A DNA stretch of 64,000 bases. Origin: Auanema rhodensis. Lineage: Eukaryota > Animalia > Nematoda. The stretch spans positions 14,570,001 through 14,634,000 of the forward strand of contig OZ059899.1 in the NCBI GenBank assembly GCA_964057225.1, given 5' to 3'. The translations under genes were made by a program, and so were the position numbers. The notes beneath the pieces are model-generated. The model was given only the letters and a program-made list of their open reading frames with translations, was not told the origin of the DNA and made no database searches. Below are positions 3,665 to 35,917 of the stretch, in pieces (the stretch's first letter is position 1; each line of letters opens with the position of its first letter).

Positions 3665-5961
3665 ATCAAGATGTTCTATTTAAACGAAGTTATAACTCAT
3701 TTAGCCATCCATAACATATAGTCCTTTCAAATAAATTTTTTTTCTTACCGAAACAAAGAAAAAACGAATATTTCCGTATTTGAATCTATAAATTTGAACT
3801 GTTATAAGTATTTTTCTCATATTTTCACATCTCTAAGAATCATTGAAATCACATAAGAGTATAAAAATAAAGTAATGGCTGGGAAAATTTTTCCAAAAAA
3901 AAAAAACATTTTCACAGCAGTAAGTTAAAGCCAGAAAATTCTACGTTAAGCCTCAAAACAATGTTAACGCAATGCGAATCTCATATTGTGTCATGTTATT
4001 TTGTGCTATTTTCAGAAGTCCAAAGTGAGTAAGACTCAGGATGAAGAAGAACGGACCAAGGTTCTTGTTTTTGACTTTTTTTTTTGTTTCTTTAAACATA
4101 TATTTGTCTTGTTGTCTTGGGTACAATGATATATGTTTAAGGATTTCCAAGTGAAGTGTAATAGCTTAACTCTGGAAATCTCTTGACATCATTATCTTGT
4201 CATCTTATTTTGTTTGTTGTTGTTTCAAAAAGTCTTCAAAAAATGAAAAAAAGCAGGAAGTAAAAGAAGAAGGAAAAGCTCTGCTCACACATGTCTTTGT
4301 TACGTTCTTGCCGTCTTTCAGGTATCTGTGATTGCCATGGAAGAAGACGAGGAGATGCGTCGCCTGGAGCGCAAAAAACGCTCACAGGAAGATATGGTTG
4401 CTGATTTCGTGAAGATTCTGGAGCAGATGAGTGAGTATTAAGCTAGTCCTATTCATAAATTACGTTTATTCTTTCATTGATTCTGCTATATATGTATATG
4501 TTGCCAATTACTTTAATGTTTCAGTGAATCCCCGACAGGCTGTTACCTCATTCGTGTCAGCTACGACCGGCCTGGGAGCTGTCATTGTTGCTCTGCTCTA
4601 TCTGAACAATGTGCCAGAAACAGCAAGTAAAGCCAAGGAATTGATTGTTGTACTGATAGTTTATGGTTGGTTATTATCTTTCTGTTGAATCTCGCTGTGC
4701 TGTTACTGAGAGCGTCACCAACGTTTTCGTCCAGCTAGCTTGCTTGGTTCTGTTTTTTGAGAATTTTGAATGAGATCAGTAAATCGCTGTGCTCATACAG
4801 AATAGTCTTATCATTGAAACCATATAAGAAAGGAATTCATATAATATTTTGCAAGATTAAATGTTAATAACAGGATTCATAATTCCGGCTTGTATGACTC
4901 AAAACAATTATTGCAATATTTGCCTTTTTTTGCCTCATTATCGTCACATGTTTTCAACCTTTTTATCAGCTGATTATCACTGATTTTAATTTTGCAACCA
5001 ATAGTTCAGTGATTATGAATTACAAATTTCAAAATGAATAGATAAATGGTCTTAAATTATTTAAATGTCAAGGTTAAAATTGAATAAATCAACAAAAAAA
5101 AAAAGATATTTGTCTTCAGAAACTCTTAGAACTTTTTCTTCGTTCAGGTATACTTCAAGTACTTTTGGCTACTGCCTTCTTTGTAACATGTATGCAAACA
5201 TCAATTGCTGTTTCTAAAGGAGTTAAGGTTTGTTAAAGCTTATTATTTTCTGAAAATGTTGAGAAAAAGTGAATTTTATAAGGAATAAGACTGAAAGAGG
5301 TGATCAGAAAAAAAACATTCGAAAGGATAAGGATGAGGAAGTTCGAACGCCTCACAACTATACTTGAGGCTCAGATTTCAAGGAAGATGATCGCTTTCAG
5401 AGGTCGTCGTATTCTTTCAATTATTGTGAATTAAAAGAGAATTGGAAACAAGTTAAAATGGATAGCGAGTACGAGAGAAATTGGGAGGGCGAGAGGGGGA
5501 GGATGTGGATCGGCTGACTGACTCTTGAGTGCCACCCTCTAAATCCATAAAAGATTTACTCTTTCTGTCAGACCAGAAAAAAACACATTTCTTTTGATTT
5601 CAGGATGCTTTTCAAATTGTTGTCGGTCTACTGGTAGCACTTGTATACGTAGCCATCGCGCTCATATCATTAGTTGTCGGAATATTCGGTACGTCCTTCT
5701 GATAATGCTCAAGGATTAGATCATGATAAAGCAATGTTCATAATCTTAGCATAAGCTGTTACAGCATTTCTTCAATCTTCACTAAAACTGTTTATATTAA
5801 TCATTTAAGGTTTTTATAAAACTATCTGCTTGGTTAGCTATGTGGAATACATCGATCGCACATCATTGTTCTTCTGTCCACCACCTGTGTTCTATACTTC
5901 ACTCTGTGTTTTCATACTTCACATTATACTTATTGTACTTAAATGCTGCTGTTGTAAATAA
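2672..5961 (+). CDS. Small four-transmembrane protein with a C-terminal Cys cluster, TMEM272-like (multi-exon)
   Basis: Hand-spliced, phase-consistent GT-AG exons: 2672-2716 (MYKIHRQGQLNNEKV; alternative first exon 3198-3230), 4016-4024 (KSK), 4322-4430, 4525-4665, 5148-5227, 5604-5688 and 5810-5961. The product has four hydrophobic segments and ends FFCPPPVFYTSLCVFILHIILIVLKCCCCK*. AATAAA lies at 6018-6023. The family name is inferred from architecture, and the 5' end is uncertain. Confidence 0.8.
3575..3662. repeat. (CT)n microsatellite
   Basis: Near-perfect CT run; representative of dozens in the flanking zones. Confidence 0.95.
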
Positions 5962-29539: not shown

Positions 29540-29780
29540 TATTTTGCTATGTAGTTGTTCTTATTTCAATGATCTTTCTTATGATTTACATCTTCGTTAT
29601 GTGTTAAAGGTTGCCTTTTCCTTGTTGCTAGTTTGTTAGAATTATAGATAAATTTTTTCTTATATTGTCTGTTACTTGAATTACATATTTACGTACGAAA
29701 GGTTTTCTTAGCCTTCTATATATATCTGACATGTTGCGGTTTCCTACATAAACAAGACATTTAAGCTTTACCAGAATTCG

Positions 29781-32700
29781 ATGACGACTAAATTACGGGG
29801 CAGTCGCCTCGAAACCGAAGTCGATCGTGCTAGGACCGAGGGTAACTGGAAGCGCTTAACTGAGCTTCTTCCCTCTGTTCGTTCAAAGCAATCGGGAATG
29901 GATGATGCTGTAGAGCTTCTTGAGGCAGAGATTGAGCTTGAAACCTTTTTGGATCAACAAGGCGGTAAAAACATATATCACTTTGAAACAAGTGTATTTG
30001 ATTTACAGAAGTGTTAAGACCAAAAGAAGATAATATTGATGTTTTAAAACATGCCGAAACACTTCTTCTTAAATGCCATCAAGACAAAGAAAAAACGTCT
30101 ATATGGCTTGAAGCTCAATTATTATTGGCTAAACTGTATTACGTATCAGCAAATTATGAGAAGGTAAAAGAATAAATAATGTCACTCAATACCTATACTG
30201 TTTTTCAGTCCTTGAAACAAATAGAAAAATCCTGCATGGAATCAGGAAGTACTCCATTCCGAACTCTCAGAGTTTTACGACTTGTAGCTGAAGCTTATGC
30301 CATAAAAGGTAGTGACAAACCTTATCTATAAACTATAATGGAAGTATTGCAGCATTATGCTTAGAAGTAACTGGAGTAGAAGATAAGACAACTCGCAATA
30401 AGTCAGCGTGTTGCTTCGAAAAGGCAGCTGAATTAACGATTTCATATGTTTCTGAATTGGAGAAAGTTCTGGGAAATAGCATGGGAAAGAGTTTGTTCAC
30501 TACTACTCGAAACAATGATAGTATTATATCTGATTCAGCGGTAAACCCACTCACCAATTCAACGACTTCTGTACGCTCGCAAAAACAAGAAAAAATAGGT
30601 GATTTATTGGAATGTTGTCTAGAACGAGTTGCACAACTGCGAGTAAAGGATACCACAGTTGATAGAGTGAATGATCCTGAAGGAATTGAATGGTTTTTTG
30701 CTTTGCTTGCTCTTTTTATAATTTTCTATTTTCCGGTATCGCAAAATTATAACTTGCCTTGGTGATAAGTCGACAGGTGAAAGACTACAACAGAAATTGT
30801 CTCGTCAACTGGCTGAATTGTTGTTTCGTGTTGTTCCTAGTGATTGTAATGATCCCAGCCAAGTATTAAGCACCAAAGCAAAAAACCTAAGGTATTCTTT
30901 ACGATGTTGTTCAATTTACCGATTTTCTGGCAGTTTCTACGCTGGATCTCAACGGGCGTATTTCTCACCCACTTCGCGGACCGAAGAAATTATTCTTTTA
31001 TTACTTATTAGTGAAGTAAGTTCCAATATATTTCTATATATTATATTACCTTTTTAAACATTACTATGTAGTCTATACTCAAAACCGAACATATAATACA
31101 TTGATCCAAGTTATGAAAATGTGTGAAACTTGCGCAAATAAATCCAACCGGCCGCAATTCCGGTTTGGTGTATGGGACATCCAACATTTTCCATATTATT
31201 GATATATTATACGCTTGAACTATCTCTCCCTCACTTCCTTTTCTGGCATGTAGCTATGTTGTGTTGAATTCTGCTTCGTAATTTCATTTCTCATATCATT
31301 CCTTGAGCACTATGCCTTTGCTGAACAAGAACAGTTCCAGTTATTGCTGGGAAGATAACCCATTTCTTTTACGGCATTCCAAGGAAAGAACTAATGCAGC
31401 TGATACGGAGACTGTTGATTTCTCAACTATTCCCGACTGTTCTTTGCCTCCCTTGGATACTGAACGCCAACTTCAAAACATCATGGATTGTATTCTGCCA
31501 CCGTTAGTTTTCAAATCTGAAGAAGATTTCTGGAAGCAGCGTACATCGACAGCGCCTGTAACACGCATGGATATGGCAGCATTAGAAGAAAAGTTCGAGC
31601 ATGAACTTGAGTCTAGAGCAGCCAAGCCTTTTGGTATTTGTCCTATTCGTAGACAAATCTACGATCAACTTTTTGGTGATTGTTTTACTTAGTTTTCATG
31701 AAACTTGTGGCCTTATTCAGATGAGCTCATTCGTCAGACGACTGTTTCATGCTCAGAACGAGGTTTACTCCTTCTACGGATACGTAACGAGATAAGGATG
31801 ACGTTTCTGGCATACCAGACGTTGTTAGAAAGTGCTATAAGCTATGGCTTACGTAAAGCACTTTCTGTTGAAAATGATCAATCACGTGCTGTATATGAGC
31901 GAGATGAAGAAAGATCAAAGAATTCACAACTTATGCTTAAGTATTGCTTCCTCATTTCTAAATTTGCAATTGTTTGGAGGTTTTAGGATAGCACAGCTTG
32001 AAAGACGCGCAGCTGCTGACAAAAATGCTGCGGAGGAAGAGCTTGAAATTTTGTCGCAACGAATGAAAGAAGAAAATGAAAGACTCATAGATGCAAATAA
32101 GACTCTGAAAAATCAATTACAAAGCATTTTACAATTGGATCAGTTGAAGCCATTTGATCATGACACTACTAAACAGCCAGAAAAGAAATGAAATTTTGTC
32201 CTCATAATGAATCTATGTCCAATAAACCATGCTTAAAATCTCATTTATTCCTCCATTTCACAGATTTTCATTTTAATTTAAATCCTTCTCTTAGGTTCTT
32301 GCCACAAGAGAAGTAGTTCTTAGCCGTAGCGACGATCTTGCTGCTTCTAGACTGCAGTCTATTAGAAATGCCAAATCTGTTTACAATCTTCTAACTCTGG
32401 TAAAACTATCAACTTTTTCAATTCCTGTTTCATTCTCATCTGATTATCTACAGGTTCTATCTACTATTCGTCAATATCATTTGATGTCAATTATTTTTGA
32501 AAGAGCTATGAAGTTTGCTAACGAAGATTCTTATATTTGGTATTGTTTTTTTTTAATTTCTTTGAAAAAAAATTGTTTTCTAGGCAACAGTTTGGCCTTT
32601 CTCTTCTTTGTAAAGGACGTTGGCTTAGAGCGGCTCATGTACTTGACCAGAGCATCCAAGTGGATAGCTCGGAGGGTCCATTACAACATTTACTAGCATC

Positions 32701-34510
32701 ACAGCTATATATACAGCATCTTGCTCAATATGATATTGGTATTCCTGAACTGAAGTTTTGTGTTTTGATGAAAATAATTCAGCTTATCAGCATGCTCAGA
32801 AGGCTACCGATTTATGCTCAAATGCTCATTTTGCTTATTTACGTCCAAGATGTTTATTAATGGCTGCTCTAGCTCAGAGGTAAGTACATAACTTAAATTA
32901 TTATCTTACAACTATTAATTTAGTTTACAAGCACAAGCTGAAATATGCTGGGATGATAAGAAGAAAGGATTAGGTAAAGCTGTAAAGCTTTTTGAAGAAT
33001 GTGTAAATGAAGATCCTCATGATTATTTGAGTTTGTATTACTGTGCCCTTTATCACGCAATTGGTGAGTCTTTATTTTTATTTTTTTTAGAGTTGGTGAA
33101 ATTTCAGTTCGGGATCTTGATGGAGCAAGAGATCGTTGTGCTCGTTCTTTGGAGCGAAATCCTGATCAGCCATCGGCCATTATGCTTTTAGCTCTTCTTT
33201 TCACTGCTGTCGGAGATCTTAAGGTCTTAGCCTCCAAATGTTTAATATTTGAAACCGTTTTTCGGATTTTAGGGCGCTTTAGAACTTGTGGTAAACGCAT
33301 TGAACGATTTCCCAACTCACTATGGTCTCTTGGTTCTACGCTTGCATATTGAAATCAAGTTCGGAAGAGTAGATGAGTCACTCGGAACATGCACTGCTCT
33401 TCTTGATTTCTGGAAGAAGAAAGAGCCTGCTTATTACGATGAAGATAGAGCTCAGGCTACAGTAAGTGGCACCGACGCTGCTGCTTTACTTGGAGTAAAA
33501 GCCGGAACTCCTGTTGGTGGAAGGGATTCTAGCGTTACTGGAGCCCACAATGGGTTGCCATATGCTCCAAGTGTATTAGGAACTGCTGGAAGTCAGGTTG
33601 GACTTGATATATCAGGTAATTCCCTGTGTATTGTAACATCACAATTTACTCTATTCAGGGGATAGTGGAGTAGCCCAGTCGGAAGGTGGAGGCCAATCTA
33701 GTGCAAGTGATTCTGGAGTTGCTGGTTATAACTGCGGATTCGCTTGGTCCCGGTTCCGCGCCAGAGTAAATAAAAATCTTCATCTTGTTATCTAAATGTA
33801 TATGATTACAGGCTAATATGTGGATGGCATTGGCAGAATTGTTCTTATCTCAGAACAGAATATCTGATGTTGGACCATGTGTGGAGCAAGCTATAGCATT
33901 ATTCCCTCATTCTTATCAAGTTTTATATCTCAAGGTTTCTTTCAATTTTGAAGTTCCTGTTTTAAAGTTATTCTATTTCAGGGAAGACTTTTCTCAGTTC
34001 GGGCTGATACTAACAGTGATGAACAAGTTGCATCTCGATTACGCTCTGAGGCCAAAGTAAACTGATTATTTTCAAATCTTATTCTTATATTCTTTACATT
34101 CAGGCTGCTTACTTATCTGCTTTGGCTCTATCTCCTTCTCACTCATCAAGTCTTCATCATCTCGCTATTTTGTATGAAAAAGAAGAGAACTTTAAGATGG
34201 CCGAACAACTGTACAGGTAAATCTAAAAGACTTATATCAAAATCTTACATTTTGTTTAATTTTTTAGCTTTATTAGCAAATTTTATTAAGTGTTATTATC
34301 TCGTCGTTGATTAATTATAACTATTTCAGAGAATTAGTTCGTGTTGATCCTATGAATTGTGATGGCTGGCAGCAACTGGGTTGCTGTCAGATGAGACGAG
34401 GCTTGATGAAAGAGGCTTCTGAATCTTTAGCTACAGCAGCAAATTTGGACAGATCCACTCCTCTACTTCCATTTTCAGCAATTCCAATTGTATTTCCTTC
34501 TGGGTTTTAG
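29781..34510 (+). CDS. ttc-7: Tetratricopeptide repeat protein 7 (TTC7/Ypp1, PI4KA complex scaffold)
   Basis: N-terminus RLETEVDRARTEGNW; LRVLRLVAEAYAIK; RQLAELL; EEIILLLLISE|VLATREVVLSR; TPR repeats; C-terminus STPLLPFSAIP. Confidence 0.93.
31312..32191 (+). CDS. dyla-1: Axonemal dynein light intermediate chain p28 / DNALI1, nested in a TTC7 intron
   Basis: Exons 31312-31675, 31721-31940 and 31987-32191. Family motifs CILPP and GICPIRRQIYDQLFDELIRQTTVSCSERGLLLLRIRNEIRMT..AYQTLLESAISYGLRKAL, then a C-terminal coiled coil. AATAAA at 32221-32226. Confidence 0.93.
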
Positions 34511-35013
34511 GAGGGTACTAGAAGCCCTACGTATATTGTACAAGAAATTTGATGTACATTCTAATTTATTTATTTCTAAACTATTTATTCTGAAATATAG
34601 GATGACAATGTGTTTTTCTCATTACTTTTCTATATTTTATTTCTTTTGCTCGCTTTAATTGACGTTTCCATATTTCTTGATCTTCTTTTTTATATTATTA
34701 GGGTTTGTATACTTGTCTCCTTGGAAGATTTCCGGTAAGCTTCATTGTTGTGAACATCAGCTTTCGTCATTTTCAGTTGATGTTATTTCACACAATTGCC
34801 TGTAAACTGTGATGTATAATAGGTATATAATTAACTTATTAATCATATGCTGTCATAGATTGTTTTAACATCCATAATAAGAATTTTTTGAAATCATCTC
34901 TCTTTCTGTTAGAGTTATTTAGCTCCTTAACTATATTTTTGTATAAAAATCGAATGAACTGTGTATATTTCAAAGGTTTTTAAAAGAAAAAAAATCCACT
35001 AATTCAGGGAAAT

Positions 35014-35917
35014 ATGGACAAAGGTCAATTTATTGACATTGGTGAATTCGATGAAACTTCTGTGGATTGCTCAGAAATGCCGCAATCAGCAGAACAATAT
35101 CTCAAACAAGTTGTTCAAATGAGAAAACACTTATTTCTTTTTTTGCTTTGATTTAAGGTAATGGTTTCAAGAAACCGTTGCCCTGATGTTGTTCGTGCCC
35201 ATGTGCTTCCGAAAGCTGTGGAATCAAAAGCTGTAAACGTTCAGGTTTTTGTTGGACCAAGTATTTAACTAGTTATATGATTATAGAAGAAAATAAAAGA
35301 TGTTAGGTGTCAACCGTTAGAATGGCAACAGGCGAAAGCAGAAGACTTCGCAGCAAAAAGAAAGCAATTTCTTGCTGCGAAATCTTCGTTTACAAAATTA
35401 AAAATTAAGCTTCCTCATTTGGATGATGAGGATGCCTGGAAAGAACTTATATTAGATCGGTGTCATCCAGAATTAGAGAAAACATTGAAAAATTTCCCTA
35501 ATCATGTTGCTACTCCTCCCACAGCATCTTTGATTGCTAGCATGTCACCAACGCTGGTAATCAAATTCGACAAGGATCATATATTCTAACAAATCTCTGC
35601 CTAGGTAAATACTTTGATCCCATACATTGTGGATTGGGCCAGTAGTGAAAGTTTTATTCGTCCTTTAAGAGAATGGCTTTACTCTTTGATGTTAGTAGTT
35701 GAATTACCGGTAGGTACAGCTTTTCGGATTGACAATCTCATTCTCTATTTTGTAGCTTCTTCATGATGTTGTAGCTGCCTTGAGAGATGTGACGAAAATG
35801 TGCAAATCGCTCAGATCAAATATTGCTGTTGATAGAACCGAAGATATAATGGAAATGTCTTTCTTCATAGCTGTTGTTTCCATGTTTTTCGGGCAGAAAG
35901 ACTTGGGCGATGAGTAG
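35014..35917 (+). CDS. smi-1: Gemin2 / SMN-interacting protein (SIP1 family)
   Basis: PQSAEQYLKQV...CPDVV, EWQQAKAEDF, EWLYSLML, and C-terminal FFGQKDLGDE*; four GT-AG introns. Confidence 0.9.

Follow-up and report, generated by a model that had tools for sequence, protein, structure and literature searches.

Intron 7 of a TTC7 homologue in the nematode Auanema rhodensis houses a complete DNALI1/p28 gene, in the sense orientation, which gives rise to a separate mRNA and very probably is self-contained, with its own promoter; the gene would have entered the intron once and been flipped later. The locus lies in a 64,000-nucleotide stretch of contig OZ059899.1 (the window), to which all positions refer unless another contig is named. 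A preliminary description of the window had proposed same-strand nesting within a TTC7 intron, and this was confirmed: the whole nested transcript (31289-32246) falls within 31016-32294, and both genes are on the plus strand. The features are listed below with the evidence for each; X1 to X4 denote four RNA-derived runs, and L002 is a contig from a related nematode.

29763..34923, plus strand: host TTC7 homologue, transcribed span, with ATG at 29781 and stop codon at 34508-34510 (RNA contigs, TTC7_N)
30934..31015, plus strand: host exon 7, ending in LLLISE, phase 0 (translation, RNA contigs)
31016..32294, plus strand: host intron 7, 1279 nt, GTAAGT..TTAG (joint from 31015 to 32295 in four runs)
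31016..31288, plus strand: upstream space of the nested gene, presumed promoter (RNA absent over 31079-31275)
31289..31311, plus strand: minimal 5' UTR of the nested gene (start of an X3 contig at 31289)
31312..31675, plus strand: nested DNALI1/p28 exon 1 (translation, Pfam, matches to solved chains)
31676..31720, plus strand: nested intron 1, 45 nt, GT..AG (spliced out in X1 and X4 contigs)
31721..31940, plus strand: nested exon 2, 220 nt (translation, Pfam; length identical to that in the L002 orthologue)
31941..31986, plus strand: nested intron 2, 46 nt, GT..AG (X2 contigs)
31987..32191, plus strand: nested exon 3, coiled-coil tail, with TGA at 32189-32191 (translation, RNA contigs, relatives)
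32192..32246, plus strand: nested 3' UTR, with AATAAA at 32221-32226 (furthest contig end at 32246, 48 nt before the host acceptor)
32295..32399, plus strand: host exon 8, starting with VLATREVV (translation, Pfam, RNA; 89% identity to L002 exon 8)

The intact three-exon gene that had been placed at 31312-32191 was recovered at those coordinates, with exons at 31312-31675, 31721-31940, and 31987-32191. Translation of the joined exons yielded a 789-nt coding sequence for 262 amino acids with no internal stops. Both nested introns are GT..AG (45 nt and 46 nt), canonical as proposed. The upstream space, given earlier as about 300 bp, measures 296 nt from the host donor to the ATG at 31312, and the AATAAA does end 68 nt before the host acceptor, counted from the end of 32221-32226 to the last base of the intron.

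Pfam domain analysis of the nested gene was carried out exon by exon. The PF10211 (Ax_dynein_light) profile, for which the curated cut-off is 26.4 bits, matched exon 1 over profile positions 1-67 (68 bits; E value, 1.5e-18) and, collinearly, exon 2 over positions 69-125 (80.3 bits; E value, 2.4e-22). Exon 3 alone, where the C-terminal part of the domain (profile 126-187) would be expected, gave no PF10211 match at E<0.1; it is conserved at 37-68% in the homologues L001, L002/L004, L005, L007-L009, and L011. The nested protein is collinear with Chlamydomonas p28 (7ju4_v; residues 7-116 and 118-172) and with human DNALI1 (8j07; residues about 51-132 and 134-199), and the matches to these solved axoneme chains had E values of 1e-14 to 6e-18. 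Among named proteins, its nearest relatives come from the nematodes Bursaphelenchus okinawaensis, Strongyloides, and Acrobeloides nanus. Judged by sequence, the nested gene encodes the nematode orthologue of DNALI1/p28, a light chain of axonemal inner-arm dynein. The p28/DNALI1 chains bind inner-arm dynein heavy chains in axonemes, and nematodes are not known to have motile cilia. The C. elegans homologue, dyla-1, is expressed in a few ciliated neurons, the OLQ sensory neurons (PMC3112216). Like the nested gene, dyla-1 (F41G4.1) is p28/DNALI1-like, and we liken the two at the level of the family, which is common to both. Another nematode homologue, that of B. okinawaensis, whose genome was inspected, is located outside TTC7.

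The domain content of the host indicates that it is a TTC7 homologue, in which a TTC7_N domain is followed by TPR repeats. TTC7 is a scaffold of the PI4KIIIalpha complex, and its partners are PI4KIIIalpha, EFR3, and hyccin. Four pieces of TTC7_N (PF19440) were found in the host exons in profile order, at 4-62, 80-118, 263-336, and 338-371 (36.9, 19.6, 23.1, and 22.1 bits, respectively; only the first exceeds the 27-bit cut-off alone), and matches to C-terminal TPR repeats followed in the last host exons, the final exon being a TPR repeat. Since piece 263-336 ends exactly at 31015 and piece 338-371 starts at 32295, no host exon is missing between them. The best match of host exon 8 among solved structures was to residues 338-371 of human TTC7B, a weak one (E value, 0.29). 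The exon joint LLLISE/VLATREVVLSR had been predicted in the preliminary description, and it was found as such across GTAAGT...CTTAG, a span of 1279 nt (31016-32294). The remaining 12 listed host joints skip only 42-54 nt each, compared with the 1279 nt of intron 7. Introns of about 45 nt are the norm here, and the G+C content of the window is 31-41%. The positions of the host 3' introns are approximate, as an exhaustive intron search was ambiguous past 33659. We also noted a host joint at 30691-30735 that skips 43 nt with noncanonical GG..CC ends (GT..CG if shifted by one base) and recurs in the host contigs of X1 to X4.

The RNA evidence consists of assembled contigs from four runs (X1 to X4) of one study; such contigs carry no strand, lack true ends, and drop rare isoforms, so that an infrequent chimera, a spliced leader, or early termination of the host transcript could escape detection. 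About half of the words sampled from the region occur in these runs, and the lack of introns in their contigs indicates that they are derived from RNA. Fourteen contigs aligned to 29700-35600, of which 12 were listed individually; the other two were assigned by depth bins to nested exons 1 and 3. In each run, one contig of 3.0 to 3.7 kb represents the host mRNA, with at least 13 joints; six joints of the whole set of contigs were outside the list. The splice from 31015 to 32295 was found in all four runs, with GT..AG ends. Separate contigs span 31289-32246 with the mini-introns removed, which establishes that DNALI1 is expressed. One nested contig covers 31289-31566. An X1 contig joins 31439-31674 to 31720-31941, which removes nested intron 1, and the same joint was seen in X4. 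In X2, a contig at 31736-31941 ends in the unaligned letters ATAGCACAG, identical to the beginning of nested exon 3, and a second contig at 31983-32246 carries the one mismatch expected for a spliced nested intron 2. The X3 contig that starts at 31289 is collinear with the genome and has no extra letters. Another X3 contig, at 31981-32221, retains 6 nt from the 3' end of nested intron 2 with no mismatch and represents an unspliced or partly spliced copy.

Word depth was 3-5 for the nested contigs and 19-55 for the host contigs, depth being a poor measure of expression. Over 31079-31275, depth was zero in all four runs. Every one of the 12 listed contigs (of 14) is explained by either the host or the nested gene, so that none of them is a host-nested chimera, and none joins a host exon to 31307, 31721, or 31987. 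These data show two separate, correctly spliced mRNAs, with the host intron removed whole. They also show that the nested mRNA is present at a low level, starts at or before 31289, and ends at approximately 32246.

The locus was compared with its counterparts in other nematodes. In the 5.08-kb contig L002, TTC7 exons 5 to last and the downstream gene are collinear with the window on the minus strand (tblastx, blastn). The DNALI1 orthologue has the opposite orientation (plus strand) and is flanked by the homologues of exon 7 (4706-4621) and exon 8 (3676-3572); contig L004, from a second run assembly, has the same layout at 99.7% identity. The mark of TTC7_N at the locus of the relative is faint. 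The L002 orthologue is intact (exons 3795-4140, 4179-4398, and 4433-4613; 248 amino acids), and its protein shares 68% identity and 87% positives with the nested protein of the window. The intron positions are conserved between the two, exon 2 is 220 nt in both, and dN is approximately 0.28, with dS saturated. The L002 host intron is 944 nt long, with 118 nt between the nested ATG and the host acceptor. At L002 4609-4621, the nested stop codon overlaps an AATAAA and stands 7 nt from the host donor of the opposite strand; with the stop so placed, the nested 3' UTR must overlap host exon 7 in antisense.

The closest homologues of the nested protein, at 64-68% identity, were found only in run assemblies. 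The comparison of TTC7 neighborhoods covered B. okinawaensis and four long contigs, L005 to L008 being too short to tell. The homologue of B. okinawaensis lies between SLC35F-like and AMP-binding genes and not beside TTC7, and no TTC7 was present within 5-10 kb of the homologue on the four other long contigs. Synteny had been suggested as a means of dating the insertion; the nesting is common to one relative and absent near TTC7 in five more distant ones. Among the four closest species, the distance is about equal (59-66%) and two are represented by short contigs only, so that these species do not polarize the flip. In word-based protein searches for further relatives, nested exon 1 gave three matches and nested exon 2 gave seven, all on short contigs; the host exon 6-7 open reading frame gave zero matches, and scans of metagenomes gave none. 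When the noncoding flanks of the intron were aligned between the window and L002, only 7- to 9-mers matched, too little similarity to place the inversion breakpoints.

From these gene orders and orientations we infer that the nesting is lineage specific and that the gene is flipped between species. The arrangement would be explained by a single entry of the gene into the intron in a common ancestor and a later micro-inversion, confined to the intron at both ends, that turned the gene around. Two independent insertions into one and the same TTC7 intron are unlikely. A search for transposon ends or long repeats around the nested gene returned only low-complexity matches of 12-15 nt, which we treated as chance. 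One of these is a perfect 12-nt inverted repeat, AATTTCATTTCT / AGAAATGAAATT, at 31280-31291 and 32184-32195, which flanks the nested gene at its 5' end and at its stop codon. It is of low complexity and is probably a chance occurrence, though its two arms coincide with the expected places of inversion breakpoints.

The orientation of the relative's gene bears on how the nested mRNA is made. An antisense copy cannot come from host RNA, yet it is conserved, which makes a promoter of its own the simplest reading; lineage-specific nesting combined with a flip likewise argues for one. The nested gene of the window would be transcribed from a promoter within 31016-31288, although no promoter motif was found there. 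No X-box (DAF-19/RFX) was present in the intron, window-wide matches to it were below chance, and none was common to five orthologous upstream regions. Neither the intron nor the window contained matches to Rfam families of noncoding RNA. A scan for sigma-70 promoters was discarded as irrelevant in a eukaryote. Within the A+T-rich upstream space, we observed a G+C-rich palindrome able to form a hairpin, AACCGGCCGCAATTCCGGTT, at 31146-31165.

As had been pointed out, four additional splice sites and a poly(A) signal are unavoidably present in the host pre-mRNA; in the RNA contigs, the host mRNA skips them all. Three properties may account for the tolerance of the sense copy by the host. First, the nested introns, at 45-46 nt, may be defined and removed as units, which would consume the internal sites. 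Second, the host donor (GTAAGTT) is nearer to the general donor consensus than are the nested donors (GTGATT and GTATTG). Third, cross-splices that did occur would be out of frame and would yield substrates for nonsense-mediated decay rather than proteins. We modeled splicing of host exon 7 to 31307, 31721, or 31987, splicing of the nested donors to host exon 8, and inclusion of nested exon 2 as a cassette. In every case the frame was shifted, with a stop 4-24 codons past the junction. Out-of-frame products with early stops lend no support to a switch, to productive chimeras, or to release of DNALI1 from host RNA, the three outcomes raised in the preliminary description.

In the last of these, the DNALI1 mRNA could be cut from the host pre-mRNA, as from an operon within an intron, if a spliced leader (SL) were added in trans at the AG of 31305-31306 and the 3' end cleaved near 32246. 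This AG, in the nested 5' UTR, is a putative trans-splice acceptor. It stands 5 nt before the ATG, as does the AG in L002 (CACTCAG/GGATC ATG), and such spacing is usual among trans-spliced nematode genes. The host and the next gene downstream also appear operon-like. However, the X3 contig that starts at 31289 crosses the putative acceptor with no leader letters, and the acceptor itself (TTGAG) is weak. An acceptor located past the host donor would be expected to splice in cis, and the product of that splice stops after 5 codons. In the relative, moreover, the gene is antisense to its host, intact, and under purifying selection, and host RNA is no source for it there. Release from host RNA is therefore improbable. 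We attach equally little credence to the TTC7 intron having become a polycistronic precursor, a state that would be possible only after a flip from antisense to sense in this lineage.

The apparent operon-like arrangement concerns the next same-strand gene, at 35014-35917, which is conserved and collinear in L002/L004 and has weak Pfam matches to SIP1/Gemin2 (PF04938; 21 and 14 bits, below the cut-off). The coordinates of X2 and X3 contigs imply a 185-nt GT..AG splice at 34820-35008, a joint that is not among the listed rows; its donor would lie in the TTC7 3' UTR, about 312 nt beyond the stop codon, and its acceptor 6 nt upstream of the ATG at 35014. The X1 and X4 contigs of TTC7 continue unspliced to 34897 and 34923. 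The contigs that lead from TTC7 toward the downstream gene look like read-through between operon-like neighbors.

A regulated switch, in which host transcripts end at the nested poly(A) site or splice into nested exons to give a truncated TTC7 or a chimera, is very improbable. The nested signals do lie on the sense strand of the host, and rare forms would be dropped from contigs. Against this, the stretch at 31079-31275, where RNA would be expected if host transcripts ended in the intron, has none, so that the idea of a tissue switch with truncated TTC7 was not borne out. Nor was that of chimeric transcripts: of the 14 contigs from four runs, the 12 listed include none, and all those modeled stop early. 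A switch under selection would also require a conserved orientation, and the orientation differs between species. An assembly artifact, with the nested segment misplaced or flipped in this assembly or in the contigs of the relative, is scarcely credible, although all sequences used are short-read or database assemblies and the two runs that supplied the only contigs of the relative have neighboring accession numbers and probably belong to one project: DNA runs of three studies contain 98-100% of the sampled 31-mers of 31016-32294, and the relative's two run assemblies agree at 99.7% identity over their common 5.08 kb. Inverted repeats flanking the nested gene do not exceed 15 nt in the window, and those at the L002 locus do not exceed 18 nt, lengths too short to confuse an assembler, and together with the 31-mers this makes a flip during assembly unlikely.

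A self-contained nested gene with its own promoter, the reading that we favor, has parallels elsewhere. It had been stated that nested genes are usually antisense to the host; this holds only as a bias, in that 71% of nested genes in Drosophila are on the opposite strand and 29% on the same strand (Lee and Chang 2013, PMC3814207). Of the same-strand nested genes in flies, 73% are single-exon genes, which was explained by selection against mis-splicing (PMC3814207). In C. elegans, 567 opposite-strand nested pairs have been reported (PMC12274878). Like the same-strand genes of Drosophila, the nested DNALI1 lies whole in one intron, has a separate mRNA, and carries a potential cost in mis-splicing; unlike the single-exon majority, it has two introns, and the other introns of its host measure about 45 nt. 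Between D. melanogaster and D. pseudoobscura, micro-inversions within host genes have been described that extend over exons of nested or overlapping genes (PMC1779558). The inversion proposed here resembles these in that it is small and would flip the nested gene with the host exons untouched. It differs in its nematode hosts and in the tight fit, the nested gene occupying nearly all of an intron of just 0.9-1.3 kb.

The locus is also comparable to loci of the unc-17/cha-1 type and to operons, in which same-strand genes are likewise packed in one transcribed nematode region. Unlike at the unc-17/cha-1 type of locus, none of the listed contigs splices a host exon to the nested gene, and thus no host 5' exon serves as a shared leader in them. 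Unlike a downstream operon gene, which starts shortly past the upstream 3' end, the nested DNALI1 is not downstream of the 3' end of its host; it lies in the middle of the host, whose stop codon follows 3.2 kb later.

Same-strand nesting and intronic micro-inversions are already documented, and in this respect the locus is real but ordinary. What is new is the flipped orthologue in the same TTC7 intron of a relative, a useful detail rather than a new principle. For annotation, the locus is a warning that gene callers may merge or split such nested pairs. The two nematodes offer a natural comparison, in which one host intron contains one intact gene in sense in one species and in antisense in the other. 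This pair could be used to measure the cost of same-strand nesting, in terms of mis-splicing, premature polyadenylation, and nonsense-mediated decay load, and the definition of very short introns in this organism bears on the idea, drawn from flies, that selection acts against mis-splicing.
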